DNA from: Macrostomum lignano | Taxonomy: Eukaryota | Direction: 5' to 3' | NCBI GenBank assembly: GCA_002269645.1 | Contig: NIVC01000834.1 | Coordinates: 124,001 to 188,000 of the forward strand | DNA: 64,000 nt | Part shown: positions 2,409-40,649 of the stretch, one piece after another | How the letters are laid out: each line of letters starts with the position of its first letter | Numbering within the stretch: the first letter of the stretch is position 1 | The notes under the pieces: model-generated | The model's input: the letters and a program-made list of their open reading frames with translations, nothing else | What the model was told of the DNA's origin: nothing | The model's database searches: none | Translations under genes and position numbers: made by a program

Positions 2409-3711
2409 TACAAGGGTTGTTTAGAAAGTCTGCAATCAAATGTGTCTAACAGTTTAAGGGATTGAACAAATGTAACACTACTCTTCCTGCTTCTCAATGT
2501 AGGCACCTTTGAGGCTTATGCACTTGTGCTACCTCTCAGGCAACTTCTCAATGCTAGAAACATAGAAATCGGCAGGTGACCCCCTGACCTACTGGCTGAT
2601 GGCCGATGCTGTAGAGAGCTGTACTGGCAACCTCGGAAGGTTTTTTCATCTTTCTGAATAGCCAGAAGTCACTGGGTGTGAGGTCTGGCAAGTAGGGTGG
2701 GTGTGGCAGCACTTCAAAGCCCAGGTCCAAAATGGCAGCCATTGTTGCCTAGCTGGTGTGCAGCCTGGCATTGTCGTGCTGAAGCAGGATACCATGGCTC
2801 AGTTTGCCACGCCGTTGGGCCTTGATGGCTTCACGCAACTTCTGCAGGACTTGGATGTAGTACTCACTGTTTATTGTGGCACCATAAGGAAGCCATTCAA
2901 TGAGCAGAAAACCCTCCTTGTCCTAGAAGATGGAGGCCATTTGCTTGCTAGCTGAAGGTGCAGTCAGGGCCTTGACAGGTGTGGGCTCATGGCTGGCCTT
3001 CTACACACTGCTCTGCATCTTGGACTCTGGCTCACTATAATGAAACAAGGATTCATCCCCAGTCACAATCTGGTCCAAAAAGTTGGGATCACTGCAATAT
3101 GACTGGAGGAGCTGCCAACACACCTAGACCCACTCTCGTTGCTGCTGGTCAGTCAGAAGTTTCGGGACCCAATGAGCAACAATGCATGACATACGGAGCT
3201 CAACCATCAAGATTGAATGAATGGCCATTGATGAGATGCCAGTAATGGTTGACAACTTTCGCACTGTAGCTTGGCAGTCAACATCTAGAGCACGATGCAC
3301 AAGCTCAATGTTTGACCTGTTGACCGTGGTGACAGGCTAGCCATTCCATGGAAGGTCATTGACTATCTCCCAGCCATCTTCAAAATGCTGCACCTTCTTG
3401 TTGACCATTGTTTTTGATGGTGCACATTTGCCATACATTGCTTGCAACTTGCAAAGAATTTCTGCCTGTTGCTTTCCTTGTTTCCACAAAAACCAAATAA
3501 CACTTTGCTTTGCTTTTTCGTTATTTAGCATAGTGATGGAATTCGTGTGACTAAAAACACTGCAAGAAGGAAATTCCTGGCTTAAACAAGACCACTCTTG
3601 ATTTAAAACATTCAGGGTATGATATTTGTCTATGGTATAAAGTTTCAAGACAGAGTAGTGACTCAAAAAATATATGCATGTTTGATTGTGGACTTTCCGA
3701 ACAACCCTGTA
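2409..3711 (-). mobile_element. Decayed mariner (Tc1/mariner, DD34D) transposon, ~1.3 kb
   Basis: TA at both ends. ~33-bp TIRs: CAAGGGTTGTTTAGAAAGTCTGCAATCAAATGTG versus the reverse complement of the right end, CAGGGTTGTTCGGAAAGTCCACAATCAAACATG. The internal minus-strand frame carries mariner motifs. Confidence 0.93.
2640..3531 (-). pseudogene. Mariner transposase pseudogene
   Basis: One continuous frame from ATG 3531 gives an HTH region (VIWFLWKQGK..EI...YG), WVPKLL, IVTGDE, HDNAR and HPPYLPDLTPSDFWLF. There are 34 residues between the 2nd and 3rd D. Five in-frame TAG stops (3337, 3124, 3001, 2923, 2749) and an apparent frameshift after KMKK. Confidence 0.93.
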
Positions 3712-7768: not shown

Positions 7769-10700
7769 ATGTCTGCTTACATTGACGCTAGTCAGACTGC
7801 CTCAATCACTGACAATGAAGAAGTTGATCACGTCGACCTGCAGGACGATGCGCAGGTGACCACCGCTGATGGCTCAACCATAGACAACTCATCTGGCAGT
7901 CAGCCAACAATCAGCAAATCCGAAGCTCTGATCTCAATTGCTGTACTGTGCTGCATTAATTTGCTCAACTATATGGACAGATTCACCGTAGCAGCAGTAC
8001 TCGATCGAATCGAAAAAGATTACAAAATAGACAATAGTAAAGCTGGCTTATTGCAAACTTCATTCATTGTATCCTACATGCTGCTTAGTCCGTTATTTGG
8101 CTACTTGGGCGATCGCGGCAGTCCTGGCAGTCTGTGGAGCCGCAAGACCATCATGATTGGCGGTGTGCTCGCCTGGTCTGCGGTCACTTTGGCCAGTTCG
8201 TTCGTGCCTAAGAACCAGTTCGGCCTGTTCCTGCTAACCCGTTGCCTAGTTGGCATTGGCGAAGCCTCTTATATTACGGTGTCAACACCTATTGTGGCCG
8301 ATTTGTTTGTGGGCGACGCTCGCACCGTGGCATTGATTGTGTTCAATCTGCAGGTACCCCTGGGCAGCGGTCTGGGCTACGTGGTTGGCGGCCAGGTGGC
8401 TCAGGCAGCCGATAGCTGGAGATCAGCGCTACGGGTCACGCCAGGTCTTGGTGAGTTTCAAGTTTTAGGATTGTTGTTTTGCTGTTCAAGAGGATTGAGG
8501 TTGTTAAAGGGCTTATTATCCTGCTGCTGGATCTCTGTAATAGTATCTGGATCCTCAGATAGATTATCTCGGTATATTCAGGTAGATTATCTCCGAATCT
8601 TCAGGTAGATTATTGGACTTTCAGGTAGATTAATAAAATTTTCAGGTAGATTATTGAAATCTTCAGGTAGATTATTGAAATCTTCAGGTAGAATAAATTG
8701 AAATCTTCAGGTAGAATAAATTGAAATCTTCAGGTAGAATAAATTGAAATCTTCAGGTAGATTATTGAAATCGTCAGGTAGATTAATAAAATCTTCACGT
8801 AGATCTTCAGGTAGATTATTGAAATCTTCAGGTAGATTATTGAAATCTTCAGGTAGATTATTGAAATCTTCAGGTAGATAATTGAAATCTTCAGATAGAT
8901 AATTGAAATCTTCAGGTAGATAAATGAAATCTTCAGGTAGATAATTGAAATCTTCAGGTAGATAAATGAAATCTTCAGGTAGATAAATGAAATCTTCAGA
9001 TAGATTATTGAAATCTTCAGGTAGATTATTGAAATCTTCGGGTAGATTATTGAAATCTTCGGGTAGATTATTGAAATCTTCAGGTAGATTATTGAAATCT
9101 TCAGGTAGAATATTGAAATCTTCAGGTAGATTATTGAAATCTTCAGGTAGATTAAATTGAAATCTTCAGGTAGATTATTGAAATCTTCAGGTAGATTATT
9201 GAAATCTTCAGGTAGATTAAATTGAAATCTTCAGGTAGATTATTGAAATCGTCAGGTAGATTAATAAAATCTTCACGTAGATCTTCAGGTAGATTATTGA
9301 AATCTTCAGGTAGATAATTGAAATCTTCAGGTAGATAATTGAAATCTTCAGGTAGATAAATGAAATCTTCAGGTAGATAATTGAAATCTTCAGGTAGATA
9401 AATGAAATCTTCAGGTAGATTATTGAAATCTTCAGGTAGATGAATGGAATCTTCAGGTAGATTAATAAAATCTTCAGGTAGATCTTCAGGTAGATTATTG
9501 AAATTTTCAGGTTGGGTAATGAAATCTTCAGGTAGATTATTGAAATCTTCAGGTTTAGTCATGAAATCTTCAGGTAGATTATTAAAATCTTCAGGTAGAT
9601 TATTGAAATCTTCAGGTAGATTATTGAAATCTTCAGGTAGATTATTGAAATCTTCAGGTAGATTATTGAAATCTTCAGGTAGGTTATTGAAATCTTCAGG
9701 TAGATTATTGAAATCTTCAGGTAGATTATTAAAATCTTCAGGTAGATTATTGAAATCTTCAGGTAGATTAATAAAATCTTCAGGTAGATGAATGGAATCT
9801 TCAGGTAGATTAATAAAATCTTCAGGTAGATCTTCAGGTAGATTATTGAAATCTTCAGGTAGATTATTGAAATCTTCAGGTTGGGTAATGAAATCTTCAG
9901 GTTGGGTAATGAAATCTTCAGGTACATGTAGATCTTCAGGTAGATTATTGAAATCTTCAGGTAGATTATTGAAATCTTCAGGTTGGGTAATGAAATCTTC
10001 AGGTTGGGTAATGAAATCTTCAGGTACATGTAGATCTTCAGGTAGATTATTGAAATCTTCAGGTTGGGTAATGAAATCTTCAGGTACATGTAGATCTTCA
10101 GGTAGATTATTGAAATCTTCAGGTTTAGTCATGAATTCTTCAGGTAGATTATTGAAATCTTCAGGTGGATTATTGAAATCTTCAGGTATTTTATTGAAAT
10201 CTTCAGGTATTTTATTGAAATCTTCAGGTTTAGTCATGAAATCTTCAGGTAGATTATTGAAATCCTCAGGTTTAGTAATGAAATCTTCAGGTAGATTATT
10301 GAAATCTTCAGGTAGATTATTGAAATCTTCAGGTGGATTATTGAAATCTTCAGGTATTTTATTGAAATCTTCAGGTATTTTATTGAAATCTTCAGGTTTA
10401 GTCATGAAATCTTCAGGTAGATTATTGAAATCCTCAGGTTTAGTAATGAAATCTTCAGGTAGATTATTGAAATCCTCAGGTTTAGTAATGAAATCTTCAG
10501 GTAGATCTTATCAGAATCTCCCAAACCCTTTCCAAGGCGTCGTCTGCGTCCTGTTGCTGCTGCTCCAGTTCCGGGAGCCGGCCTGCGGCCAAGCCGAAAA
10601 ATCCACGCACATGCACGCCACCTCCTGGCGGGACGATGTCCGCCATCTGCTGCGCAATCGCAGCTTCATGCTCAACACCCTCGGCTTCACCGCTGTTGCC

Positions 10701-11468
10701 TTCGTAGCCGGCGCCCTGACCTGGTGGACACCGCTGATGCTGGACTTGGATCTGCAATTGCGCGGCGGCCCAGTTAAACCCGACCAAGCCGCCCTGGGCT
10801 TCGGCATTGTCACCTGTGTGGCTGGCATCGCCGGGGTGGCGCTGGGCAGCGAGATCGCCAGGCGGCTGCGCCATCGAATGCCGAATATTGATCCCATTGT
10901 GAACGGCGCAGGCCTGTTGCTGGCTGGCCCGTTTCTGTGGGCCACCCTGTACCTGGTGCCAGTTAGCGTGTACCTAACCTTGGTGCTGATGTTCGCCACG
11001 GAGTTGCTGCTGTGCTTGAACTGGGCTCTGGTTAATGAGATCACACTGAGAGTGACAGTGCCAACCAGGCGGTCAATGGCTACTAGTATCAATATATTGG
11101 CCAGCCACCTGCTGGGAGACGCCGGCTCGCCTTACCTGGTTGGCCTGGCGTCGGATCTGATTGCCAAAAACTCGGCCTCGATAGCTGTGAAATTCAGCGC
11201 CCTGCAGCTGGCCATGTACTGCTGCTGTTTCGTGTCCGTGCTGGGTGGCGGCGCCTTCCTAGCCTGCTCGCTGACTTACCTGGCCGACTGCGAGAGAGTG
11301 ATTCGAATTGAACGGGAAGCGAATCGGTATTATCGAGCAGAGGGCGAGGCTTACACACCGCCCGCTAGCTTGCAGGCCTCCTCCTGTGATGGGGATCCGC
11401 AGCAGCAGTCTCCTACTGATAACAATGGCGGTCTGGTGGTTAACTGGGATGCCAATGCTATTGCTTGA
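7769..11468 (+). CDS. SPNS1: Spinster-family MFS transporter (SPNS1-like), 537 aa; exons 7769-8450 and 10537-11468
   Basis: Spinster motifs INLLNYMDRFTVA, GLLQTSFI.SYM..SP.FGYLGDR, TRCLVGIGEASY, ALRVTPGLG, NWALVNEI..RVT.PTRRS.A and SHLLGDAGSPYLVG. Donor G|GTGAGT at 8451 and acceptor TTTCCAAG| at 10536 join in phase 1 to restore TPGLGVVCVLLL; total 1614 nt. The symbol is a family-level assignment. Confidence 0.93.
8578..10508. repeat. 21-bp minisatellite (TCTTCAGGTAGATTATTGAAA)n, ~90 units, filling the spinster intron
   Basis: Directly visible. It explains the PEDFNNL, SSGRLLK and YLKISII repeat ORFs. Confidence 0.97.
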
Positions 11469-14399: not shown

Positions 14400-15879
14400 C
14401 AGTGTTGCCACCACTGCGATTTTTTATCGCTCAGCGATAATTTTGTCTATTTTGCTCATTTCCTGCGATTTTTGTGGACACCAGTCTTTTCAACTTTTTT
14501 CAAGTACTGTGTTTCATTTTGTGCTCAATTCAAGTGTCATGAATGTCATCAATATAGCGTGAGGCTATGCAAGCCTCCGGTTTTGAAGCTCGGCGAAAGG
14601 AGATTGAGCATGCTGCGGTCGAGCGAGCACTGAAGAAAGCTGCTGACGAAACGGCTCGGCGAAAGAGACAGCCGGAGTTCGGCGCTCAATCTGTCCTGCC
14701 AAAGGTTCCAAAGAAAAAATGAACATCCACTGAAGAGCCTGCAGTTTTGCCTGACTAACGTTTGACTAGCCAAAGATTCACGTAAAAGTATTTCTTCCCC
14801 TACAGTAACCGACATTGATCAACAATTAAAATATTAAGAGAATTCATTTCAGCTATATAGAATTGAGAACAGATTCAGACAACTGGAATATAGCACAAAA
14901 TTTAGTTGTAAAATTGTTATTACTCATCAGCGGTCGTAGGTAGCGTCTTGTGTTTTAGTTGGTTGCTCGGGTCGGTTCCATAATGAACATCAGTATTCTA
15001 TATTATGCACTCAGCAACAGTCGGAGCCGCCGCCCTACCGAGAGAGGCGACTTCTCTCTCACCTCAACTGCAAGTGACGTGACTTGCGCCACGGCGTGGC
15101 TGAAGCTGGGTGAGAGTGAATGCAGGAGAGGGCAATCAGGGGATACCCCATCTGCTTCTTTCATCCCACATTAGACGGAGCAGGGTGGCTGGCGCAGTTG
15201 GAGTTCGCCTGACAATCCGCAGCAGACGTCGATTTGCCCTGGCTGTTGAGCCGCGGAGATCATGGCGCTGGCTGCCTATGGCTGCGTGCTGAACACTACC
15301 AGTCTCTTGGGACTTCGTTAACAGCGCTTGAATTGTTGAACGTGATTGGCCAAATTGGCGAGCAACTGCGCTGATGGATGCACCAGCTTCTAGCATGCCA
15401 ACAGCGCGCCATCGTTCAGCGTCTGTCATATGCCTGACCATTGTCACGTGTACTGTTGCACTCCCAACCCCAACCCCAGTCCATTTTGTACTCTCATCCT
15501 GGAATTCACTCTCACCCAGCTTTGGCCGCGCCGTGGTGCAAGTTGCGTCACTTGCAGTTGAGGTGAGAGAGAGGTCGCCTCTCGGTGGGGTGGCGGTTTC
15601 GACTGTTGCTGAGTGTATGTATGCCTGTCTTCCCTTAAGAAAATGCTTGTGTTGTATGATTACTTCACTGATTCGGCGTAAATGAGAGTTGCATGCAGTT
15701 ATTGCAAATTGTAGTAGTTTTTTTAGTCAAATAGAAGATGGAATTAGAAATGGAAAGCTAAAAAAGAAAGTTGTTTTCGCATACTGGCGCCTTTTTCTCT
15801 ATGACAAATAAGAAATTTGTTCCTGCGATTTTTTTCTTATCCTGCGATAATTTCTTTGGTTGCTGTAGTGGCAACACTG
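14400..15879. mobile_element. Non-autonomous hAT element (1480 bp including a nested Tc1 derivative)
   Basis: Perfect 12-bp TIRs CAGTGTTGCCAC / GTGGCAACACTG. Perfect 8-bp TSD GTTTAGAG (14392-14399 and 15880-15887). Repeated subterminal CTGCGAT motifs. Confidence 0.93.
15008..15615 (-). mobile_element. Internally deleted Tc1-like element with ~120-bp TIRs
   Basis: Long TIRs CACTCAGCAACAGTCG... / ...CGACTGTTGCTGAGTG. The right flank is TA and the left flank is TG. ORF 15136-15447 encodes a paired-like HTH N-terminus of a Tc1 transposase (MTDAERWRAVGMLEAGASISAVARQFGQSRSTI...ETGSV); no DDE domain is present. Confidence 0.88.
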
Positions 15880-17584
15880 GTTTAGAGCAACCATCAGTGT
15901 ACATTGTTCGGAGTGAATAAAGCAGTGCAAGAGGTGCAGTTTAGAGCAACCACCATCAGTGTACATTGTTCGGAGTGAATAAAGCAGTGCAAGAGGTACA
16001 GTTTAGAGCAACCACCATCAGTGTACATTGTTCGGAGTGAATAAAGCAGTGCAAGAGGTACAGTTTAGAGCAACCACCATCAGTGTACATTGTTCGGAGT
16101 GAATAAAGCAGTGCAAGAGGTACAGTTTAGAGCAACCACCATCAGTGTACATTGTTCGGAGTGAATAAAGCAGTGAAAGGGGCACGGTTTAGAGCAACCA
16201 CAATCAGTGTACATTGTTCGGAGTGAATAAAGCAGTGAAAGAGGCACAGTTTAGAGCAACCACCATCAGTGTACATTGTTCGGAGTAAAGCAGTGGAAGG
16301 GTGATCAGTTGTGACGATTGGAAAGGGCATCAAGTTAGTACAATACTCGAATTAGCCCCAAAATAATCCCAATAACTTTGTTGCTTTACGTAGGTGGAAG
16401 GGAGGGACCAATGAGATAACCTCCTTAAATAAAGGGGCCTTGGCCCTTAGCTGCCAGCAGCTCAAGCATCAGAATATTGGTTAGCCCCGCTCCTGATCTC
16501 GTAGCAGATTAGGCAGGTCCGCTGTTACGAGCGTGCAGTCTCGGTAATGAAAAGATCGCAGAACGCTCCTTCTATGCCTTCCATTTTTGGGGGAGACCCC
16601 CCCCCTCAAAAAATCACTCGGTAGCGCCACCTGAGGAGCAAATTAGACACGAGAGGTTGAGTTTCGAAATATTATAATATATTTAGACACAGTTAATAGT
16701 GGCTATGCGCGAACTAGCAGGTTTTTGAGTGATAGCCTTTCTGAGTCGGAAGTCTAGTTATGTGATAATTCATGAAATCGTGAAATCATTTTAGCTCCTA
16801 GATATAGTTGTACCTAAGTCAAGGTAGTTCAAAGTATGAGTTTGATTCCAATAATAAAATCTAGAATTGCAATGATGATGACTTACCAGTTCGACCCATA
16901 ACCATGCTATACGTTGAACTTTTTTCGGTAGTGACAGACTTAGCAGAAAAAAGTTTTCTCGTATAAGGATTTCCTACCAGCAATTCCCAAAAAAGGGAAC
17001 TTGCAATACACTCGTAACAAAAAGTTAGAAGTTAGCAAATTAGCAAAGACGAACCAATCATCAGTTTCCCGACAGCCAGGCCAAAGATTCAACAATTTAT
17101 GCCTTATATTTTTAGTTTGTAGTTAGTATAATACGTGGTGTATACGTAGATTATACTGTGATTGCTACTAAAACGTTCTTTCGCCTTTTGTAAAGTAAGT
17201 GCTCAGGTATACGACTAAAAAGAGTCTAATAAGAGCTTTCTGTCAGACAGTGTACGAGCTAAGATTTATAAGTGCAAACTGTGTGCTCAAAAGAGTTCAA
17301 ATCGCGAAAGCCTTTATATAGACTGGTTAGCCAACCTTAATGCTCGTACGAGCTATCATTTGTAAGATACGCTTAACACTCTTTTCTTGCTACTCTTTAT
17401 TAGGCAATCCCCTACACATGTATACAGGATGCCCTATGTATTTTTGCTTTTCTTTCTCAGACTTTCTAAGAAACAAGCTATCCAATCTTTCTACTCCAGA
17501 AAAGTTGAATTCATTGTAACTTCGACGTAAGATATTCAAATCATCTTCATATATGCATGCATGTACGACGTACATGCCATTTGT

Positions 17585-18346
17585 TCACAGCTCAGTGATG
17601 AGTTGCTCGTGTCTGCCGTCTCTACCAGTTGTCTCCACCTGGCGCTGATCTTCCAACAGTTCCTTGGCCTCACCAAAGTCTGAGACCGACGACTGATCGA
17701 CTGCTTCAGTCGTTAGATCGACGTCGCTTTCAATGCAGATCTCAGGCAGGAAGCAGCCGTAGCTGTGGCGCTTCACCTTCGGATCCGCGCTGACGGCCAG
17801 CTGACTTGCCTCAGGCCGGCTCGGCGGCCACAGCTCAACAGTTTGCTGGTGGTGACAGCGCATCGGCTCTCTCTGATCCAGCACTGGCGATGGAGACGGC
17901 GATGAACAGCTCAGGCCGGACGAGTTCGAGCTCACTCGATGAATTCCCGGCAGCATCGGAGCCGCTTTTAGGCCGCTGGTAGCCGTGGAGTCGCCTCGAC
18001 CGCTGCTGGTTCCTCCCGCGCCGGACTGGAGCAGGCTGATGAGGCGCAGAATCTTCTCCTTCCGAGTTCGACGCTGCACAGTTTGAATCTCCTTCAAGTA
18101 CAGCGAGACGTTGTTGTCCATGCGGTTCTTGCGCACGTAGGACGCGATCATGAGGACGATGGAGAAGCCCCAGAGAAAAACGACGGCAACAACGTAGAGA
18201 ACCTCGCCGCCCTGATCGCCTTTGGTCCGGTTGCCAGCCCCAGCCATGGCTTCGGGATCGATCTCGGCGATGAAGTAGCTGTCATTCAGCTTGCGGATGT
18301 GCAGGTTGAGCGAACCGCTCAGGACTTGGTCGCGATGGAATTTCAT
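17585..18346 (-). CDS. Single-pass membrane protein, KCNE/MinK-like, ~253 aa (start taken at ATG 18346)
   Basis: 843-nt CpG-rich open frame. One hydrophobic helix (VLYVVAVVFLWGFSIVLMIASYV) is followed by basic RKNR. N-glycosylation sequons NDS and NRT lie N-terminal to it, and there is no signal peptide. An acceptor-like TTTGCTTTGAAG lies just upstream of GCCATG. The CDS is well supported; the family call is tentative. Confidence 0.72.
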   Translation of the reverse strand: MKFHRDQVLSGSLNLHIRKLNDSYFIAEIDPEAMAGAGNRTKGDQGGEVLYVVAVVFLWGFSIVLMIASYVRKNRMDNNVSLYLKEIQTVQRRTRKEKILRLISLLQSGAGGTSSGRGDSTATSGLKAAPMLPGIHRVSSNSSGLSCSSPSPSPVLDQREPMRCHHQQTVELWPPSRPEASQLAVSADPKVKRHSYGCFLPEICIESDVDLTTEAVDQSSVSDFGEAKELLEDQRQVETTGRDGRHEQLITEL

Positions 18347-18934
18347 GGCTATTTCTTCAAAGCAAATCACAGGTAGCTCGTAACTCCGGCTTGACCTATA
18401 TCTAAATACATGTAGTTGTCCGGACATTTTCTCTCCCCATTAACTGTACGCTCTGGTCCTAGCTCCACACACAGTACAGCATTATTTCCTTTACCTTCAT
18501 CGAGTCTTCTTACCAGCTGCTCATGCCCCTCTCCACCTTGTGTCTTCTTTAGCTACGCATTCGTCTCCCATCTTTCCTGTTCCAGCATTATCATTCCCCA
18601 TCCTTTCCGCTCTAGCTATCTCAACTTCCTCTCGTCCCCGCGAAGACCCCAGATTCATTCTTTGCCATCTATCAGATGCATGTAAACTGCGTTTACAGTG
18701 TTTTCCTCTTGCTGATTTCACTTTCTCGCAGTCTTCACTTTCTTCAAAGTAACTCAGAACTGAGTTGGATATCCCTCAAACAGAATGGATTGATTAATTC
18801 TTATCTTGAGATGAGACACAAACAGCCTTAGTTAATTAACTTCGAATCCTAAAACTGAGATAAATTTCTTTGACTTTGAGACCGCTCAGGATGCTGGGCC
18901 TTTTGAGTACTTGTTAGCTTGAGAACCCAAAAAT

Positions 18935-19645
18935 TCTAACAGTGAGATCTGCTGTAACAGATGGTCTAACCCGTATCTAACAGTGAGATCTGGTGTAACA
19001 GATGGTCTAACCCGTATCTAACAGTGAGATCTGGTGTAACAGATGGTCTAACCCGTATCTAACAGTGAGATCTGGTGTAACAGATGGTCTAACCCGTATC
19101 TAACAGTGAGATTAGCTGTAAGAGATTAGCTGTAACAGATGGTCTAACCCGTATCTAACAGTGAGATCTGCTGTAACAGATGGTCTAACCCGTATCTAAC
19201 AGTGAGATCTGCTGTAACAGATGGTCTAAACATCTGTGAGATCTGCTGTAACAGATGGTCTAACCCGTATCTAACAGTGAGATTAGCTGTAACAGATGGT
19301 CTAACCCGTATCTAACAGTGAGATCTGCTGTAACAGATGGTCTAACCCGTATCTAACAGTGAGATCTGCTGTAACAGATGGTCTAACCCGTATCTAACAG
19401 TGAGATTAGCTGTAACAGATGGTCTAAACATCTGTGAGATCTGCTGTAACAGATGGTCTAACCCGTATCTAACAGTGAGATTTGCTGTAACAGATGGTCT
19501 AACCCGTATCTAACAGTGAGATCTGGTGTAACAGATGGTCTAACCCGTATCTAACAGTGAGATTAGCTGTAACAGATGGTCTAACCCGTATCTAACAGTG
19601 AGATTAGCTGTAACAGATGGTCAAAACCGTATCTAACAGTGAGAT
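18935..19645. repeat. 41-bp minisatellite (TCTAACAGTGAGATCTGCTGTAACAGATGGTCTAACCCGTA), ~17 copies
   Basis: Unit starts at 18935, 18976, and so on. Confidence 0.95.
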
Positions 19646-20283
19646 GAACTCTACTGTAACAGTTAATCCAAGAGACTGAGTTTAAAATCGGTAATTTTTT
19701 GGTAATATACTTCGTGTATTTGCAGAGTTTGCCACCTGCCGATGAGTCGGTGTGAGTCCAAACGGTGGGCAGAGTTAAGTGAAACAGAGAGCACGAATTC
19801 ACAAATTCACAAATTCACAATGAAGTTAATTAATGTTACACAAGCGAACTGGTTTCAGATTGGGCAGGAATTTGGGATAGAGCAAAACGCTTCAGACAGA
19901 AGCCGCAACAAAGTCTTCAGCAAGTTAATCATCAAAAAACATCTAAAGGTGAGACACTTGTGAGTTGCCATGCGGAGAAAAATAAAGCATTAAACCAACA
20001 ATTCTTTCTTGGGCTCTTGTCGCATTGTCTGGTTTGGTAAAAGAAAAGTTCAAACAATATGACAGGTCCTGAGGTGGCATAATAAAACCTGGGAGGGTTC
20101 AGGCCAGATAGAAGATGTTTATCAGATTAGTTTATTGGACTTAAGGATAATTAATTAATTGTAAACCAATGAGATCGAAGTTAATGGCGAATTCCAATGA
20201 AGTTAGTGAACAGGTAGAGGTTTGCTATGATGAATTGAAGCTATGTTAAATCAAAACTGTTTGATAATAATGTTGGGGACAAA

Positions 20284-21058: not shown

Positions 21059-24000
21059 TCATGCGGATCTCTGGTGCTGCAGGCCTCCCGGAGGCGGCCG
21101 GCCAATTGAGGAGCCACCGGGGCCGCCGCTTGCTGCGCCGCTGCCGTGGCTGTGCCGGCCCTCGTGCTGGTTGGTGAACCGCTGCAGGCAGACCACCCTA
21201 TCCGACAGCAGCACCGGGAATTTGGCCGGCGGATTCGTGATGATGTAGCGCTTCTTGAGCGTCTGCTTGCCCTCTTCCGGCGGGGTGAGCAGCCGGTACA
21301 GGCCGATGCAGAGGATGCCGTACCGGTGCAGAGCGCCCAGAAACAGGTCGGAGTACACCGCCCCGGCTCCGGTGACAAATTCTCGAAGTCGTTCGTCGTC
21401 AACCGCCAGCTGGGAGACTCGCGATCTGTCCCGGTTTGCCAACGACTCCGGCGTGCTGAAGCCGCCGCGAATGCCGGCGCCCTCGGCCAGGATCTGCTCA
21501 AGCTCAGGCGTTGCTCCGCCCGTGATGAGCGTCCGGATTAGCGTCAGCGCATTCTCGTTGAAATAGGCCGTGCTCATGAGCGAGTCGAGCACGCTGATGG
21601 CAAACGAGGTGCCGCAGGCGAACGGCTGCGTCATGTACAGCTCGATGTCGGGGTCATCGTCGTCGTCCTGCTCGAGGAACTGGACGTTATCGTCCATGGA
21701 GAGCTCAGTCAGGATTCGGACATTGTTATTGGAGCTCGGTGGCGTGGTGGCGACCTGCTGAGTCGGTGGAGCCTCGGTGTCGAACTTCATCGCCTTGATG
21801 TTCAGCGAGCACAGAATGGCCTCCTTATCGGCCAGAGTCGGGTCGTCCAGATTCGAAGCCTGCTTCGAGCTCAGCACCACGCAGATCTCGGCCAGGTTGA
21901 TGTTGACCGCGCGCAGGTTGGACCGGTTGAGCGGGGAGCCGGGGAAGATGCTCAGCTTGGGAAAATTCATCAGCGTCTTCCACTCGCGCCGCATGTAGTC
22001 GGCGTTGCCTACGAAGATCACGTGCTTGAGGTCGTGATAATGAAAGTTGCTCGCCCGAAGCGGCATCACGAAGTTGCGCAGGCCGATCAACGGGCTGCCA
22101 GCGTCGGCGAACAGGCAGACGACGATGTGGTTAGAGTACACCGTCGCCGTGACCTGCTCGCGGTCCAGAATCGCGTCCTCGAAGTTCACATCTGGACACC
22201 AGTGGAACATTCCAGTGGAGTCGAACTTGCGGTCCATCTGATCGTGCAGCTTCTGCAGCGAGATCGGGTTGGTGTGCGCCACAGAGAGCTTGCCGTGCCG
22301 GCTGCTGTGGCTGATGTCCCCCGGCTCCGGAGCCGATCCCGGCAGCTGCAGGTGCCGGCCAGGACTCGCGCCGCCTCCGTCGCCCAAGCCGCCCGTAGCA
22401 ACCGGTAGCGAGTTCTGGCCCTGGCCCGGGTGATTTCTGCTCCTGGGATTTGCTGCCTGCTGCTGATGCTGCTGCTTTTGCTGCTGCTGTTGTTGCAGTT
22501 GCTTTTGCTTTGATTGCGACTTTGACTTGGCCGTTATCGCCACAGAAGTTTTGCAGCGGCACTTCTTTATCAGACGCGAGTCTTCGACGTCGCCGTGGCA
22601 GCGTTTGCAGAAGAAAAACGCCTTCTTGACCTCCTCGGCCGCTTGGGCGATGAAGAAGCCCTGCGTGCCCTGCTCGATGCGGATGTTCTCCTTGGGGTTG
22701 ATGGCGATGCAGCTCTCCGTGCCCTGGTCGTTCTTGGCCTCTACAGCAATGAGCAGCAGGTTCAGCCTGGTGAAGCAGAGCTCAGCCGCCATGGGAAACG
22801 TCAGGCCTTCGAACGCCGGCGACAGGTACTCGGTGTACATCTCCATGCCGGCGCCCTCCAGGTAGTTGTTGAGCCACTTCGGCATGGCCTTGTCGTCCTT
22901 GTAGCTGCGCATGGTGAATAGGTTGGCCAGCAGGGTGGAGAAGCCGAACGCCAGGCAGCTCTGCGCCAGGAAGCCCAGCTTCAGCTCGGCGATGCAGACG
23001 GCATCATCGCCCTGCTTCCAGTCCCAGCTGGGGATGTTCAGCAGGTAAGTCTTGTTGTGGTACTGCATCAGCTGGATGATCACCTTGATCCGCTCATAGA
23101 AGTTCTTGATGGAGATCACGCGCATGATGTTGGCCGCATCCTCAGCATCCGGGTCGGGGCAGTACTTGTTGGCCAGCACCAGGCAAGCGTCCGCCGTCTC
23201 CAGGCCCACCCGGGACAGGTCCTTGGAGTTCATCACGGAGCCCTGGAAGAACTCCACCTGGGTGAAGTGACGCTTGAACAGGCCCTGCAGCTCCAGGTCG
23301 GGCACGTGCTTGTCCAGAATCACAATCTGGACGTCAACATCTTCGCGGTCCTCGTGCAGGAAGTCGCCGAGGAAGTTGGCCACGGACTCGTAGGTGATGT
23401 GGCCGCACAGCACGATGTGCTGCTTGCCGGCCTCCTTGCGGTAGTAGCCGCCGTACTTGTTGCGCGAGCTGAGAATGTCTGCGATCTCCGGGATGGAGTT
23501 GGCGAACACGGCCAGACCGCCCATGATCACCAGGGCGGAGAACAGCCGGCCGGTGCTCGTGGTGCAATAGATGTCGCCGTAGCCCACAGTCGACATTGTC
23601 ACGATAACAAAATAGATGCAGGTCGGATAGGTCATGTTGAAGCTGATGTTCGGATTGGTGAATGACGGCGGGTCGCCCGAGTTCTCAATCAGGTGCACGA
23701 AGCCGGCCGCGGTGAGCACCAGGGAGGCGAAGAATGTCATGAGTTGGAACAGCCGGATGCTCGTGCTGGTCTTCAGAATGTTCAGGTACTGCAGCACGTC
23801 CGGCAGGCTGAGGATGCGCAGAGCTCGAGTCGAGCGCAGCCCGATCCAGTTGCGGTTCAGGTAGATTGAGACAAACGACGGCGGTATGGTCAGGATGTCC
23901 ACCAGGCTGTACATCTCGAACCAGAACAGCAGCTTGTCCTGGGCGGCGATGAACCGGATGAAGAAGTAGATCAGGAAGATGACATTGAAGGCGAGATCGA

Positions 24001-24544
24001 TTTGCTGGGACAGGCTGTCCGACCAGCGGATGCACTCCTCGGTCTGCTTCATGCTGGCCGTGTCGATGATGTACACCATGAGGGAGGCGATGCTGATCAG
24101 GAACACCAGCACCACCAGGATGCGGCCTGTGGTGGTCTGGCCGGAGATCAGCTCGCCCGCCCAGTCCTTGGCCTCCGTCAGCCAGCCGACTTCGACTTCC
24201 TCTTCGGTTGACTCGTCGGCCTCATCCTCGTCTCCGCTGTCATCCGTTTTCTCCTTGTTCTCCGGCTGCTTGCCGGCGGCGCCGGCCCTGCCGGCCCCGA
24301 TCTTGCCGGCCAGGTGCGACAGCAGGCGGTAGACAAGGACGAACAGGACGCCGCCAAGGAGCACGATGCCGCTGCTGGCCAGGAAGATGTACCACTTGCG
24401 CTGGCCGGTGCAGGCCAGCGGGCCCGCCAGCGACGAGCGAGTTCCGTTGGCGGCTGCCGCGGCTGTCGCAGCTGTCGTCGTTGCCGCAGCCGCAGTCGTG
24501 AGCAGCTTCGTTGAAGCAGAAGCGGCCGTGGTGGCAGTGGCCAT
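21059..24544 (-). CDS. KCNMA1: Slo1/BK large-conductance Ca2+- and voltage-activated K+ channel alpha subunit, 1161 aa, single exon
   Basis: Contains S0-S6 with S4 ([11 protein letters not shown]), the pore [12 protein letters not shown]1 ([18 protein letters not shown]), a heme motif CKRCH, RCK2, the Ca-bowl [24 protein letters not shown] and C-terminal RYIITNPP. The ORF-track start at 24580 is GTG; the first ATG (24544) is in a GCCATGG context. Confidence 0.97.
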
Positions 24545-25785
24545 GGCGCAATGGTTTTGCCGATCTGCCGCTGCCGCCACCAGCTACTCAGCATCGACGG
24601 CTGAGGGCCGATCGTGCGCGCTGTCGGTAGCGCTGAACCAGCAGGAACAGACGGCCCACTTGGCGAGGTTGACAAGCCGCGAGAGCGCTGCTCGAAGGCT
24701 ATGAATGCGAGCTGTCAGACGCTGGCCTATGGACAGCCACTGCAGCAGTGGAAACTAAAATCCACTTTGGGCGTAAATTGCCCGACTCTCCGGTGCTGTA
24801 TCTTATCCCCCGCCCGTTGGTGTGTACTGCAACAGGAAGCGCAACTCTGTCCACCGATGCTCTTAGTGCCGCATCGTCCCCAGCAGCCTCTCCGCTACCC
24901 TCTAGTCTTCGCCCCTCTCCCATTGGCCGCTGCAGTTCGCGAGCGGGGCTCTGGACTGTCCAGTGCAGTTGTGAAGACCGAAAAAGCCGAACAATGCGCC
25001 CGCTGTTCTTCACTGTCCCTTCCTCAACCATTGCTTCTGAAGCTGCACAGGAGGCGCTGCGGGCCGTTCAGTCAGTCAGGCAGCCAGGCAGTATCGGTAA
25101 TCAGCGATCCGTCTGCACTTTTGGTGGGCGCACGGCACAAAAATGCTAAGCTACCCCCTCACTGCTGCTGCTGCTGCTGCTGCAGGCAGTCCATTTGAAG
25201 CCCCACCACGCCCTCTGGTCTGCCTCTCCCTTACAGCAGCCATTACTCGTACAGCTGCTGCAGTCTCTCCCTCTCTCTCGCCTCCCCCTTGTCAGCGTGT
25301 TTTAGGGAGGCCAAGCTTTCGAAGCTATCAAAGCTCTTGGGGCCTCGGGATGGGGGGCAGCAATCTGCCCGGGGGGGACTTTGCGGGCAGGGGGCAGAAT
25401 GGAGATGTTCGCAGTCCGAAATGAATGGCCAAGCAGCCGGGACAAGCATTTTCTCTTCTGGGTTGGCCAAATGTTTCTTAGCAAAGGATAATTCTCCTCG
25501 TTACTTGCCCCCCTGTTTCTGGGTCAGCTCTCGTCTTTTCTCCTCTTATAGTTTCACTCCTTATCCAATTTTAACCATCTGGTCTCCATTCTAACAAACA
25601 GCGCTGCCCCAGCGTGAAATGATTTTCTGGTAAAGAAATCCCCAAGCAACTCCCTTGAACAGCAGAACAAGTGCTGCAATCAATATTGAAAAAGGTCTGT
25701 TGATCTGAATGACTTATCTTGAGGCTTTATTAAAAGGGTTTTGAAACTGTGGTCCGCCTTTGTTAAAACTGTTGCTGGAAGACGA

Positions 25786-26341
25786 AAAACTGGGACTGAA
25801 AAAGCGCCAAAACTGGGATTGAAAAAGCGCCAAAACTGGGACTGAAAAAGCGCCAAAACTGGGACTGAAAAAGCGCCAAAACTGGGATTGAAAAAGCGCC
25901 AAAACTGGGATTGAAGAGGCGCCAAAACTGGGATTGAAAAAGCGCCAAAACTGGGATTGAAAAAGCGCCAAAACTGGGATTGAAAAAGCGCCAAAACTGG
26001 GACTGAAAAAGCGCCAAAACTGGGACTGAAAAAGCGCCAAAACTGGGACTGAAAAAGCGCCAAAACTGGGATTGAAAAAGCGCCAAAACTGGGACTGAAA
26101 AAGCGCCAAAACTGGGACTGAAAAAGCGCCAAAACTGGGATTGAAAAAGCGCCAAAACTGGGATTGAAAAAGCGCCAAAACTGGGACTGAAAAAGCGCAA
26201 AAACTGGAACTGAAAAAGCGCCAAAACTGGGACTGAAAAAGCGCCAAAACTGGGAATGAAAAAGCGCCAAAACTGGGATTGAAAAAGCGCCAAAACTGGG
26301 ATTGAAAAAGCGCCAAAACTGGGATTGAAGAGGCGCCAAAA
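25786..26341. repeat. 23-bp minisatellite (AAAACTGGGATTGAAAAAGCGCC), ~24 copies
   Basis: Directly visible with period 23. Confidence 0.95.
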
Positions 26342-26821
26342 CGGTCATCTGAGAACAACCACAGCATGTTTAACTCGCATCCGGAACTGAGCTGCCATCC
26401 AGCGGTGCACCGAAGCTCTCTGTATGCCGAGTATTTTTTCATCGCTATGAAAGCTGCCCCCGCTGTTGCAATTAGCACAGAGTGCAACAGCCAGCTGGGG
26501 TCTGCTGAGAGGCGAATGCAAAACATGCCAAATTTATTCTGTAGCTCAGCGTATTCCCTCAAGTCTGACTCTTGCCAACACATCTGGCGAATTAACTGCA
26601 AGCTGAGCTAGGGTTATGCTAATCAGGGCTAGGAATTTACGGAGCACAATTAGGAATTGTCTGGCTAGTGAGCGTATTAGTAGCATTTTATCTGTTTGAA
26701 TGCACACTGGCAATAAGGAGCGTTGCTAGCGGCCCCGAATTACCTCTGTAGGATCTGGGAAATCGGGCTGCCAACGATTTCTCAGATGGCCTCTCTACTT
26801 CTCCGCTCCTTTTACTCCTGT

Positions 26822-27160: not shown

Positions 27161-27515
27161 CCTCTTTCCACCTCAAAACTACAATTTCCCGTTTCCCTAT
27201 TTTTCTCCCAACCTTCCCATCAGGTTTCCCCCAGAAGCGTCTGCAAGCGCACTGGCAGCAGTACTCAATGCTACAGGAAGCAAAACTGACAAACAGAAAA
27301 TTATACGAAATTTCATAGAAGAGCAGTGCAGCGCGATCCACTCCAGCCGTTCGAATTTTAATCATTTCCGATCGATATCTGTCACCAATACGACTTCCGA
27401 ATAGCCTAACTTTGAGTATTAGCATTGGAGTCACTTTAAATAGTTTTAATGCTATCTAAAAACCCAGAAAGTATGTACATTGATCTCTAGCTTGTTGATG
27501 GGGTATGAAAGCTTA

Positions 27516-29642
<2,127 letters not shown>

Positions 29643-30087
29643 CTATAAGATCTTGGCAGTTCAAGTTGTAGCCCCCCAGATCTGCTGTTAAGATCGAACA
29701 CTGTAGCAGGGAGTGTTCTGGCCCAGCCTAGAGTTCATAAAGAGATTCCTAGATAGATGCTGGCACCGCGGAGACACGGGGGGCAGGGGGGGGGCAATAT
29801 AACCAAACCCTTCACCGCAGGCACGTCGAAAGCAAAGCGAAGATCGGCGGCCCCAAATGCAATTTATTTTCTGGAACGTCAGCAAGCAAAAGAGGATTTG
29901 GTTTTGGTGGCGAGTTTAAAAATAGCTGCAGATTGCTGGACCGAAATCGCACTTCCTTTTAGTACCTGCCCTGATGGCAGCTGCAGATTGTGTGGGACTT
30001 TGGAAAGTATTAGCCTTTGGCTTCCCAAATCTAGTGCGTCCGCGAATAGAGCGTTTGATTGACACAGCGATGTTTGGTGCATTGGTA

Positions 30088-30786: not shown

Positions 30787-31283
30787 ATTTTGCTAAAGAT
30801 ATTCCTGCACGCAAACCCTACCAATCAGGCGCGAGAATCAGCTACAATTCGACCCAGCAACAGAGGCTATAAAAAATAAATTAATTTTTATCGACATTTT
30901 TCGATTCCCAGCAATTTCGAATTCTCAAGCGGATCTGTCATGATTAATAACCCATGCCAGAGTCTGCTTGTCTCACTGGGCTGATTGCTCAACACGCAAT
31001 GTGGATCTTCTTTCTGGACTTGCCCTCGAGTTGGGTCCGGATTTCAGCCGGAGAGCTCGGGGCGTAGCCAAGAGGGAAGCAATTAATTATTAAATTTCAG
31101 AACAGCGGGGGTCCCAGCAGCTAGTCACAGGCCCAGGACATTGTGCGAGAGATCCTTGTACTTTTCTAGCGTTTTGCTGGCATGGATGGCCTTTCAAGTA
31201 AATATTTCACATATTTTACTTGCCTTATTAACTAATAGATCCATATGCATATATATATTTACGAGCGTATGTATATCCACATG

Positions 31284-31890
31284 CTGGCACTCATTTTAGC
31301 GCCACAGGCACTCATTTTAGCGCCGCAGGCACTTATTTTAGCGCCGCAGGCACTTATTTTAGCGCCGCAGGCACTCATTTTAGCGCCGCAGGCACTTATT
31401 TTAGCGCCGCAGGCACTTATTTTAGCGTCGCAGGCACTCATTTTAGCGCCGCAGGCACTCATTTTAGCGCCGCAGGCACTCATTTTAGCGCCGCAGGCAC
31501 TCATTTTAGCGCCGCAGGCACTTATTTTAGCGCCGCAGGCACTTATTTTAGCGCCGCAGGCACTCATTTTAGCGCCGCAGGCACTCATTTTAGCGCCGCA
31601 GGCACTTATTTTAGCGTCGCAGGCACTTATTTTAGCGCCGCAGGCACTCATTTTAGCGCCGCAGGCACTTATTTTAGCGCCGCAGGCACTTATTTTAGCG
31701 TCGCAGGCACTTATTTTAGCGCCGCAGGCACTCATTTTAGCGTCGCAGGCACTCATTTTAGCGCCGCAGGCACTCATTTTAGCGTCGCAGGCACTCATTT
31801 TAGCGCCGCAGGCACTCATTTTAGCGCCGCAGACACTCATTTTAGCGCCGCAGGCACTCATTTTAGCGCCGCAGACACTCATTTTAGCGC
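31284..31890. repeat. 21-bp minisatellite (GGCACTCATTTTAGCGCCGCA), ~29 copies
   Basis: Directly visible; it is the source of the LILAPQA ORF. Confidence 0.95.
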
Positions 31891-31891
31891 C

Positions 31892-32015
31892 GTGTCCTTG
31901 AGTAAGACACTTAACTCTGCAGTCTTCGGACTGAACAGCCGTACGCAGCCTTCAGATGGGCCGCGCAATAGCTGCGGCTGAGCTGTCGGTTGCACATTGC
32001 CCGTGGGGCCAGGTT
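31892..32015 (+). mobile_element. Truncated SINE (central domain plus 3' end), same family as 38802-39098
   Basis: GTGTCCTTGAGTAAGACACTTAACTCTGC and GGACTGAACAGCCGTACGCAGCCTTCAGATG..CCGCGCAATAGCTGCGGCTGAGCTGTCGGTTGCAC match the reverse complement of the intronic SINE. Confidence 0.8.
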
Positions 32016-37867: not shown

Positions 37868-40649
37868 TCAGAGAAAGAAGCGCCTCCTACTCTGGTCCAT
37901 CTCGTGCCGTTTGTGCAGCCACTCGTAGCCGCCGCCGGCGCCAAGCGGTCCGGTTTGCAGCGAGCGCAGCTTCAGGGTGAACCTGGGCCCGACCTCTTGC
38001 AGAGCGCAGCGCGGCTTGGCGCCTGGTTTGGCGCCGGACCCAGGCTGGCGCAGGATGTAGCGATGGTGCCGGAAGAACACGTAGTCGCGCTGATTGTGAA
38101 AAGTCACCACACGGGCGTGCCGGCGCACACCGCTGGCGCCTGGGAAGATGGCGGCCAGGCCGCGGGCGACCCGACGGCCCAGACGGGTGTGGAATCGATT
38201 GCAGAGCACCTGCGGCGCCACAGTCTCCGGCTTGTCGTCCTCGGGCGGGCGGGGCAGCTCGCGGGGCAGCCGGACGCTCGACAGGCGGAAGGCGAAGGTA
38301 GGCCCAGCCGGTAGGTGGGTTAGCAGGGCGGTGCACGGCTTCTTGTCGTGCTCGCCAATTATCTGCGTTAGACCAAAGTTACCGATATGTATCGAAATTA
38401 AATTTAAACACAGGATGATTTCCGACCTACGATTAAGACTTTGGGGGTACATCAAATAGAATCAGGGATTTTTTTCTGATCTGAGGCATTGCTAACCTAG
38501 GTAGGATCGATTACCGACATGTATCGAAAAGAACTTTTTTCGGAATGGGGATTTTTATTAAATCTGCGATATATTACGAGATTAGATTGAATCAAGATTA
38601 GATTGAAAAATGATTTAACGATATGTATCGAAAAGTACATTTAAACACTGGAGATTTTTCTAATTTGTCTGTCTTTAAGAAGGCGTTAAAAAGATCGGCT
38701 GCCATTATGTATCGAAATTAACTTTCAACACTGAATTAAGCGTAAGATTTTTCGAGCTGCAATTGATTCAGAATTCAAGAAGTGCATTTAAAGAATATTA
38801 ATAATTGATTACACCTGCCCTAATGGCCAGACGTGCAACCGACAGCTCAGCCGCAGCTATTGCGCGGCGCATCTGAAGGCTGCGTACGGCTGTTCAGTCC
38901 AAAGACTAAGGAAGGGGGGGTTGCCACAAACCCTTAATTACCCCAGCTAATGCTGGCACCCATTTTACAGCTGGGTAAATAAAGCAATGCAGAGTTAACT
39001 GTCTTGCTCAAGGACACAAATTGTTCCGAGTGGGTTGAGAATCGAACCCCCGACCTTTCAGTCGTGTATCCGACGCTCCAACCACTAGGCTACAACCCAT
39101 TGAATATTAAAAGTTAATGATTTAAATAAAGCATCAATTATCGAAATGAGTCCATGGTAACTTTGAACACTAAAGGCATAAATATGCAAGCTCTGTGTTA
39201 TCACAAATACAAGATAAAAAAATGCAATTCGCTCTACTAACAGTAGCTTAATAAAGACAGGCTGCTAAATTGCAAAAACGTGTAGATAAATTATCGCGCA
39301 CCATCACAGCGGTGAACTCCTTGGCCTTGGCGGCGGCGAGCACCCGACCGAGAGGCAGTCGGCGACGCCGGCAGAACACGGCGTTGGGGACGGTGCGCGC
39401 CAGGCAACGGCAGAAGGCGGCTGTGCGTCGGCCGACCTCGTCGGCGTGAGTGACCAGCAGGCGGGGCAGGCGAGCTTGGCCTGGGGGTGGGGAAATCGAC
39501 ATTTTTTCGGGTTTGACCGATTGCAGAAAAATGGCTTCTTAGGTAAAAATATGGAAACCCATGCGTAAGGCAGTACCAATGTGACAAAATGGCACCCCTC
39601 CCTGAGTAAAATGGCACCCCTAGGAAAAATGGCACCCCTAGGTAAATATGGCACCCCTAGGTAAATATGGCACCCCTAGGTAAATATGGCACCCCTAGGA
39701 AAAATGGCACCCCTAGGTAAATATGGCACCCCTATGTAAAAATGGCACCCCTAGGTAAAAATGGCACCCCTATGTAAAAATGGCACCCCTAGGTAAAAAT
39801 GGCACCCCTAGGTAAAAATGGCACCCCTAGGTAAAAATGGCACCCCTAGGTAAAAATGGCACCCCTAGGTAAATATGGCACCCCTAGGAAAAATGGCACC
39901 CCTAGGTAAAAATGGCACCCCTAGGTAAAAATGGCACCCCTAGGTAAATATGGCACCCCTAGGAAAAATGGCACCCCTAGGAAAAATGGCACCCCTAGGA
40001 AAAATGGCACCCCTAGGTAAATATGGCACCCCTATGTAAAAATGGCACCCCTAGGAAAAATGGCACCCCTAGGTAAATATGGCACCCCTATGTAAAAATG
40101 GCACCCCTATGTAAAAATGGCACCCCTATGTAAAAATGGCACCCCTAGGTAAAAATGGCACCCCTAGGTAAAAACAGCAACGCGAAAGAATAAGCCGCAA
40201 TTATCCGGTAGCCAACCTTCGCCTCCAGCGCCAGCAGCGTCAAGAATGTCGGCAAACTCGTCGGCTGCCTCCTCAGCATCGACCTCAGCGTCCCCAGCCG
40301 GGCCAGTCATGGTGGCATCCGGCAGGCGCAGCGATTCCAGCGTGTGTGGCTCCTTGGCTGGGCCGGCAGCGCCGTTGTCGGCACCATTTCGTCGGCGAAG
40401 CTTCACGGCGGCCTCCTTGGCCTTACGCTCGGCCTGTCGGACCTGCTGGTAGGCGGCCTGCCTGCGCTGCTTGTTGCGGATGCTGCTCAGGCGCTGCTTC
40501 AGGCCAACTATGGAGCTGGCATCATCTTTCTTTGGCTTTTTATTAGTTTTCTGTTTCTTATTGTCATTGCTGTCGGGCCGAGGCGGCCCACTATTAGATG
40601 CATTCACTGCCGACTTGTTCTTGTTCGGCATTGTCTTGGTTTGAGCCAT
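37868..40649 (-). CDS. RPF1: Ribosome production factor 1 (Brix domain), 368 aa; exons 40649-40217, 39480-39302, 38362-37868
   Basis: Motifs IRNKQRRQ..Y, PHTLESLR, DEFA, PRLLVT, PNA..CRRRR, HLPAGPT.AFRLSSV, FHNQRDYVFFRHHRY, LQEVGPRFTLKL.SLQ.G and YEW.HKR.EMD.SRRRFFL. GT/AG junctions in phases 1 and 0 give 1107 nt. Confidence 0.92.
38802..39098 (-). mobile_element. Full-length tRNA-derived SINE in RPF1 intron 2
   Basis: On the minus strand: A box TAGCCTAGTGG and B box GGTTCGATTC. The central domain TGTGTCCTTGAGCAAGACAGTTAAC...CCCAGCTGTAAAATGGGT resembles the conserved central domains of CORE/Nin/Meta-type SINEs. Possible TSD GAATATTAA (38793 and 39102). Confidence 0.85.
39587..40172. repeat. 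18-19-bp minisatellite (AAA[A/T]ATGGCACCCCTAGGT), ~31 copies, in RPF1 intron 1
   Basis: Directly visible. Confidence 0.95.

Follow-up and report, generated by a model that had tools for sequence, protein, structure and literature searches.

An unannotated gene beside Slo1 in Macrostomum lignano encodes a predicted single-pass membrane protein of a conserved spiralian family

The candidate gene and its predicted product

We analyzed a 64-kb stretch of the Macrostomum lignano genome (64,000 nucleotides of contig NIVC01000834.1, assembly Mlig_3_7; hereafter called the window) and focused on a short open reading frame (ORF) on its minus strand. This ORF runs from an ATG at 18346 to a stop codon at 17585-17587, encodes 253 amino acids (aa) and lies downstream of a gene for Slo1, the alpha subunit of the BK channel. 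A first-pass annotation had described the product as a KCNE/MinK-like protein and had proposed that the two genes form a linked pair of channel pore and auxiliary subunit, possibly co-transcribed as an operon. This view was partly supported: the features had been described correctly and the KCNE label is a reasonable lead, but the BK-pair and operon reading is not supported by the comparative evidence. Judged from its sequence and conservation, the candidate ORF is a genuine gene of a previously unannotated family. We consider it rather probable that its product is a genuine N-out, C-in single-pass membrane protein of a family distributed in Spiralia, probably an auxiliary or adaptor subunit, and that its adjacency to Slo1 is most likely incidental.

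The following features were assigned to the candidate:

17585-18346, minus strand: complete single-exon coding sequence (CDS), 253 aa plus stop (from the ORF listing, the family profile and codon composition)
18355-18356, minus strand: AG dinucleotide 9 nt ahead of the ATG (ttgaag / aaatagccATG), which could serve as an acceptor for cis- or trans-splicing (read from the sequence alone)
17396-17401, minus strand: AATAAA, likely poly(A) signal of the candidate, 184 nt past its stop (pattern search)
18206-18346, minus strand: predicted extracellular N-terminus, residues 1-47, a predicted beta-hairpin with a sequon (hydropathy, AlphaFold2 model, family conservation)
18278-18286, minus strand: sequon N21-D-S on the predicted hairpin, conserved across the family
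18224-18232, minus strand: second sequon, N39-R-T (sequence)
18140-18205, minus strand: predicted transmembrane (TM) helix, residues 48-69, EVLYVVAVVFLWGFSIVLMIAS (hydropathy, conservation, gapless HMMER alignment to KCNE1)
18035-18139, minus strand: predicted basic helix of the cytosolic juxtamembrane segment, residues 70-104, YVRKNRMDNNVSLYLKEIQTVQRRTRKEKILRLIS; D77 and Y83 are invariant in the family (conservation table, AlphaFold2 model)
17600-18034, minus strand: predicted cytosolic tail, residues 105-249, rich in Ser, Gly and Pro, of low complexity (composition; no alignment across the family)
17588-17599, minus strand: ITEL at the C-terminus, similar to class I PDZ ligands of the form S/T-x-hydrophobic (family C-terminus statistics)

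The location of the ORF and the presence of the AG, at 18356-18355, agreed with the first-pass annotation. A further in-frame ATG upstream, at 18427, would lengthen the protein to 280 aa. However, the relatives described below start at a position matching Met 18346 and not at the upstream ATG. Exact-product look-ups with the 253-aa and the 280-aa form found no entry. A profile hidden Markov model of the family recovered the candidate with 97 bits (E = 5e-29), the candidate sequence itself being part of this profile. The G+C content at third codon positions (GC3) was 0.71 in the candidate and 0.85 in Slo1, compared to a G+C content of 0.40 in the flanks. Between the two closest relatives (P0001 and P0003, both from Logan assemblies) the nonsynonymous divergence (pN) was 0.20 and the synonymous divergence (pS) 0.77, indicating purifying selection. 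The candidate has furthermore retained the near-invariant family residues D44, G47, Y51, V52, V55, S62, I63, I67, S69, D77 and Y83.

The hydropathy maximum of the candidate spans residues 49-67 (mean Kyte-Doolittle value 2.71) and is its sole hydrophobic segment, directly preceded by the conserved residues D44 and G47. Since the N-terminus is not hydrophobic (mean value -0.54), the protein is predicted to lack a signal peptide. The net charge is +3 across the 15 residues that follow the helix versus 0 in the 15 that precede it. The topology claimed earlier, with sequons ahead of the helix, no signal peptide and a basic juxtamembrane segment, was thus confirmed as a prediction, based on sequence only. 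AlphaFold2 (AF2) modeled the TM and juxtamembrane segments as a single continuous helix with a predicted local distance difference test score (pLDDT) of 90-96, and placed two strands at core residues 4-10 and 13-18. The whole model consists of a hairpin and one long helix (mean pLDDT 84). A Foldseek search of this model against the PDB returned no match below E = 4, as is expected for a fold that consists of a hairpin plus one helix.

An unnamed protein family in Spiralia

A word-indexed search with the single protein gave only one relative. We therefore rely on an exhaustive HMMER (phmmer) search of 1.84 billion representative sequences, which recovered 171 clusters with E<1e-3. Of these, 22 passed E<1e-10, ranging from E = 9e-18 to 1e-10. 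Every named member is an "uncharacterized" or "hypothetical" protein, and no precomputed Pfam domain is recorded for any of the named members. In this respect the earlier suggestion of an undescribed invertebrate protein held true, as the candidate falls into a conserved family without a functional name. Named members come from the molluscs Pecten, Argopecten, Mizuhopecten, Mytilus, Pinctada, Mya, Sinanodonta, Saccostrea, Aplysia, Patella, Batillaria and Bulinus as well as from Tubulanus (Nemertea), Owenia (Annelida) and Lingula (Brachiopoda). The family is spread across Spiralia, including flatworms, molluscs, annelids, brachiopods and nemerteans.

The members share a common architecture. An N-terminal strand of alternating hydrophobic residues leads into a conserved sequon (N 0.88, T/S 0.90) and an F-x-A motif. 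In the AF2 model the sequon sits at the turn of the predicted beta-hairpin, and a variable linker follows. The helix starts with the motif [Y]-D-D-x-G-A-L-Y-Y-V and the TM helix is then conserved almost residue for residue between phyla, with Y51, V52, V55, S62, I63, I67 and S69 as near-invariant positions. This conservation shows helical periodicity (conservation moment p=0.024). On the cytosolic side the helix continues as [IV]-[RK]-K-N-K-x-D-x-x-x-x-x-Y-[LM]-K-[ED]-[ML]-x-x-[VL]-R, whereas the tails are rich in Ser, Pro and Gly and cannot be aligned between members. Among 150 members, 91 have V, L or I as their last residue, frequently within an S/T-x-V/L motif. The candidate carries the full family signature, i.e. 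the sequon hairpin, D-x-x-G-A-L-Y-Y-V, the residues S62/I63/I67/S69 and the segment [RK]-K-N-x-x-D...Y-[LM]-K-[ED]. Position 48, which is Ala in 93% of the family and Glu in the candidate, is the only near-invariant position from which it departs.

Gene structure was compared at seven loci in other species: Pecten (L004), Tubulanus (L006), Owenia (L007), Lingula (L008), two ENA genomes (L009 and L011) and Aplysia (L010, 71 kb). The CDS is contained in a single exon in the window and at five of these seven loci. Gene length equals CDS length in the scallop, the nemertean, the brachiopod and both ENA genomes. The gene models of Aplysia (51 kb) and Owenia (7.7 kb) are longer, with the conserved core lying within one ORF in each.

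Relationship to KCNE subunits

The KCNE/MinK/MiRP proteins (PF02060; human KCNE1-5, lamprey KCNE0) resemble the candidate in being small N-out single-pass proteins that lack a signal peptide and carry a sequon in the ectodomain. The first-pass annotation had described a gapless alignment to human KCNE1 with 10 identities in 25 positions. HMMER reproduced this alignment for residues 48-72, EVLYVVAVVFLWGFSIVLMIASYVR, against the human KCNE1 chains 2k21 and 9u7f in the PDB, the identical residues being E, L, Y, V, V, G, F, S, Y and R. By this gapless alignment, the invariant mid-helix Ser-Ile of the family would fall where KCNE proteins have their "activation triplet" (FTL in KCNE1, TVG in KCNE3). 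The Pfam family ISK_Channel (PF02060) matched the candidate with 12.4 bits (E = 0.13), below the gathering score of 22.1 bits, and KCNE1 in the PDB was matched with E = 0.34. At these values the resemblance to KCNE1 alone is not above chance. Nevertheless, ISK_Channel was the only Pfam match of the candidate even at E<=10, and it was also the sole Pfam match of the closest relative P0001 (E = 0.01, 16 bits). Across the family it matched 26 of 150 members at E<1 (best E = 0.0021) and was the most-hit Pfam family. However, none of the 150 members reached the gathering threshold, and the family consensus gave no ISK_Channel match, its Pfam hits (DUF7027, DUF5305 and the like) being noise. The human proteins KCNE1-5, run as a positive control, all matched ISK_Channel (5/5; KCNE1 with 237 bits).

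Profile searches gave a similarly divided picture. A profile of 54 core sequences, searched against 177,635 PDB sequences, ranked KCNE2 first (E = 0.0057), with KCNE3 and KCNE1 lower down. The second-best match was NDUFB11, a mitochondrial complex I subunit, with E = 0.04. In contrast, the full-length profile of 150 sequences recovered no KCNE from the PDB, only low-complexity and NDUFB11 noise. We then aligned a core profile of 142 sequences by hhalign to a pooled KCNE set of 125 sequences (5 human ones, validated by Pfam, and 120 from the database). This yielded a probability of 79% (P = 1.6e-5, 42 ungapped columns, score 35.6). Block-shuffled profiles scored 18.4 +/- 4.2 with a maximum of 31.7, so that 0 of 150 reached 35.6, and a reversed control scored 14.3. 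Against single KCNE paralogue profiles, though, the scores dropped to 15-27 with probabilities of 1-23%, while nine of ten true pairs of KCNE paralogues scored 36-74, mostly at 72-97%.

One explanation for these data is that the family is genuinely homologous to KCNE, though very divergent, and would modulate a voltage-gated K+ channel (KCNQ, possibly Slo1) through its TM helix. Several shared traits besides the predicted topology and the glycosylation site argue for it. KCNE is the best match, although below threshold, in Pfam and, with the core profile, in the PDB. Both groups have a Gly-Phe in the middle of the helix and, at its cytosolic end, a basic cluster of the form Ser-Tyr-x-Arg/Lys with an acidic residue after it, the family motif S-Y-[IV]-R-K-N-[KR]-x-D paralleling the KCNE motif [SG]-Y-x-[RK]-S-[KR]-[KR]-x-[ED]. 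Both are encoded by single-exon CDSs, with several paralogues per genome that have divergent tails. On the other hand, the TM helix of the family is far more conserved than the remainder of the protein, its ectodomain is a predicted beta-hairpin and most of its members end in a PDZ-ligand-like motif. KCNE N-termini are helical or disordered. The D/Y spacing of the family also differs from that of the KCNE D-P-x-x-x-Y segment, and E48, which counts among the ten identities to KCNE1, is specific to the lineage of the candidate. NDUFB11 scored nearly as well as KCNE, showing that similarity of this degree arises between unrelated single helices. The KCNE membership put forward in the first-pass annotation was thus not supported, including by the Pfam search suggested there to verify it: no member attains the Pfam threshold, and the profile signal depends on how the profile is built. 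We regard true KCNE homology as possible but unlikely. The family appears KCNE-like in architecture, while its membership in KCNE stays in the twilight zone of sequence similarity and remains a lead. A paper of 2026 on lamprey KCNE0 restates that invertebrates have yielded no canonical KCNE gene in comparative genomics (PMC13516689), and our literature search found no report of KCNE-like genes in flatworms or molluscs. The wider proposal that the family is an invertebrate KCNE branch, that KCNE-type subunits date back to at least the protostome-deuterostome ancestor and that the M. lignano member may still serve Slo1 seems distinctly unlikely; if true, KCNE-type subunits would predate vertebrates rather than having arisen in them.

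Other single-pass proteins were considered as well. In C. elegans, MPS-1 is an auxiliary subunit working with KVS-1 and belongs to the nematode-specific, KCNE-like proteins MPS-1 to MPS-4 (PMC4210162), and BKIP-1 is a single-pass auxiliary subunit of SLO-1 and SLO-2 (PMC5736756). These are likewise invertebrate single-pass auxiliary subunits of K+ channels. None of the 171 clusters bears such a name, and all named family members are from Spiralia, with no nematode among them. NDUFB11/ESSS was matched in the PDB with E = 0.04-0.4 over the helix only, around which both share a YD...GFSIVL..GS pattern. Kinship was rejected, as sequons, several paralogues and PDZ-type ends do not fit a subunit of the mitochondrial inner membrane, and we use this match as a gauge of chance similarity. 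FXYD proteins (Na,K-ATPase gamma-like), considered because the boundary Ser is preceded, at a distance of 26 residues, by a Y-D motif, were also rejected; FXYD is absent from the 25 most-hit Pfam families listed and gave no PDB match at E<=10.

A second, disrupted copy of the candidate

The exact Slo1 product is encoded on two contigs of GCA_002269645.1, NIVC01000834.1 and NIVC01002151.1, and in both of them the candidate follows Slo1 at a distance of 2.7 kb on the same strand. The Slo1 protein on NIVC01002151.1 is 100% identical to that of the window. In the candidate copy on this contig, however, a 7-nt filler takes the place of nt 61-446 (15811-15878 of the excised locus L003, corresponding to 17900-18286 of the window). 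Sequon, helix and juxtamembrane motif are all lost with these 386 nt, and the reading frame is shifted. The filler, TCCGCAA, repeats the sequence just before the breakpoint, and the deletion looks like a microhomology or template-switch event. It could stem from an allelic difference, from a homeologue or from an error in the assembly.

M. lignano is a neopolyploid (PMC10733133). The intact gene in the window might accordingly be a decaying, dispensable copy that has stayed intact by chance after a recent genome duplication, in which case its resemblances would say little about current function. The disabling deletion in one of two assembly copies is consistent with this, as is the finding that no protein from any transcriptome assembly on record matches the candidate. 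Yet the copy in the window combines an intact 253-codon ORF and coding-like GC3 with every family-invariant residue, and it has kept the hydrophobic, PDZ-ligand-like terminus and the poly(A) signal. Moreover, loss of duplicates is expected after polyploidy, and the deletion has the other possible origins given above. We therefore judge decay of the gene in the window to be quite improbable and continue to treat the candidate as a genuine member of the spiralian family.

Relationship to the neighboring Slo1 gene

Three further features describe Slo1 and the spacer between both genes:

21059-24544 (listed ORF to 24580), minus strand: gene for the Slo1/BK alpha subunit, a single ORF without interruption, 1161 aa when counted from its first ATG (Pfam)
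20131-20136, minus strand: AATAAA, likely end of the Slo1 mRNA, about 925 nt past the Slo1 stop and the only one on the minus strand in the spacer (pattern search)
18935-19645, no strand assigned: 41-bp tandem repeat array, 17 copies, 711 bp, inside the 2.7-kb spacer (Tandem Repeats Finder)

The Slo1 ORF matched the Pfam families Slo-like_RCK (1e-71, two matches), Slowpoke_C (1e-38), BK_channel_a (7e-29) and Ion_trans (9e-22), and its translation contains the DDDDDPD calcium bowl. From the Slo1 stop to the candidate ATG we counted 2713 nt, in line with the earlier statement that Slo1 lies 2.7 kb upstream on the same strand. Slo1 is intronless, reading from S0 to the C-terminus in 1161-1173 codons with a poly-Gln/Gly-rich insert in a linker. 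M. lignano genes have about 4.9 introns on average (PMC5730564), and this Slo1 may be a retrogene-derived or intron-purged copy. The copy number of the 41-bp spacer repeat differs between the two assembly copies. A tRNA-like stretch in the spacer was rejected as a tRNA by ARAGORN.

The pairing proposed in the first-pass annotation would make the candidate a dedicated accessory subunit of Slo1, linked to it and possibly derived, through spliced-leader trans-splicing, from a precursor RNA common to both. An arrangement of this kind is biologically possible in M. lignano, because 38.8% of its genes are trans-spliced and about 7% of its transcripts are polycistronic or multi-gene precursors (PMC5730564). 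The same-strand position in both assembly copies and the AG 9 nt before the ATG are compatible with it. Single-pass partners of BK are also known elsewhere, namely the gamma subunits, which have one TM domain (PMC5736756), and BKIP-1 in C. elegans. However, the spacer holds the likely poly(A) signal of Slo1 and the 711-bp tandem array, which makes an operon less likely, and we regard co-transcription of candidate and Slo1 as unlikely.

The candidate also differs from the BK beta and gamma subunits, membrane proteins that tune Slo1. The beta subunits (KCNMB1-4) have two TM helices and a large extracellular loop, whereas the candidate has one hydrophobic segment. The gamma subunits (LRRC26/52/55/38) have a leucine-rich repeat (LRR) ectodomain with a signal peptide, compared to an ectodomain of 47 residues and no signal peptide in the candidate. 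They do share the single TM helix with it (PMC5736756). No CaKB or LRR match of the candidate was obtained in Pfam at E<=10.

Conservation of the linkage was assessed in the +-10 kb flanks of the family genes at the seven loci, using gene calls and tblastn with the M. lignano Slo1. No Slo gene was found by either method at any locus. The neighbors were instead unrelated (Branch, TIM, Astacin/CUB and BMT5-like), and the single weak tblastn hit to Slo, which covers 16 residues at one edge of the L011 locus, contains a stop codon and is spurious. Contigs from the closest relatives (L001 and L005, about 2 kb) carry no neighbor that would be informative on linkage. As Slo is missing from these seven loci and the second M. 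lignano copy has lost the candidate but kept an identical Slo1, the linkage is not conserved and the pair is not obligatory. The synteny comparison proposed along with the pairing hence went against it. Of the undescribed invertebrate BK accessory subunit that the first-pass annotation had envisaged, the undescribed invertebrate family is upheld and the partnership with BK is not supported. We consider a dedicated Slo1 subunit very improbable. With the claim of a pore and its helper failing, the arrangement is one of ordinary gene adjacency, and the position 2.7 kb downstream of Slo1 is most likely incidental.

Proposed role of the family

The strong conservation of the TM helix suggests that it forms a specific intramembrane docking surface and not a plain anchor, and a docking helix would in turn make an auxiliary or adaptor subunit the most likely role. 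In such a model the conserved helix would pack against a partner with several membrane passes, for instance a transporter or an ion channel, the latter being the most natural guess. The basic helix could rest on the inner leaflet, the disordered tail might act as a regulated linker, and the C-terminus may tether the complex to PDZ scaffolds. The overall logic would be KCNE-like or Shisa-like. Auxiliary subunits of the Shisa/CKAMP type combine a single helix with a long disordered tail in the cytosol that ends in a PDZ ligand. They share only this working logic with the candidate. They have signal peptides and Cys-rich ectodomains, and no sequence similarity between them and the candidate was detected.

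Some observations weigh against our interpretation of the candidate as a genuine subunit gene with an incidental neighbor. The protein is missing from a collection of 15 billion proteins, and the gene was not called in the M. lignano genome record. The deletion of the second copy implies that, in this neopolyploid, the candidate is dispensable in at least one dose. The putative PDZ ligand is read solely from the statistics of terminal residues. Finally, flanks of +-10 kb leave room for a more distant linkage to Slo where the genes of a genome are large.

As no canonical KCNE is known from invertebrates (PMC13516689) and the architecture of the family is KCNE-like, its members form a concrete set of candidates for channel auxiliary subunits in invertebrates. 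The family covers animals used in neurobiology (Aplysia and other molluscs) and models of regeneration (flatworms). Conservation of the TM helix almost residue for residue between phyla suggests a conserved intramembrane partner, and identification of this membrane partner would matter with or without kinship to KCNE.

Other features of the window

Elsewhere in the window, 7769-11468 on the plus strand holds a gene for a spinster-like MFS transporter, with MFS_1/OATP matches in its 3' part. This gene is apparently interrupted by a repeat block at about 9150-10400, the opposite strand of which reads as PEDFNNL repeats. Genes on the minus strand include one for the cilia and flagella associated protein CFAP298 (51230-53638) and one for a ribosome-biogenesis protein with a Brix domain (37868-40700). 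Four consecutive minus-strand ORFs of 184-317 aa at 45664-49642 gave no Pfam match at E<=0.001; they could represent a lineage-specific gene or a mobile element that lacks recognizable domains. Very long micro- and minisatellite arrays of up to several kb occupy 25680-26601, 27480-29664, 31245-31901, 58656-59556 and 59781-63883. Some of them have an extreme strand skew (GC skew 0.6-0.95) and yield long spurious ORFs in several frames. Two short minus-strand ORFs, at 3337-3666 and 15136-15447, resemble by eye the helix-turn-helix N-termini of mariner/Tc1-type transposases and are probably transposon remnants.

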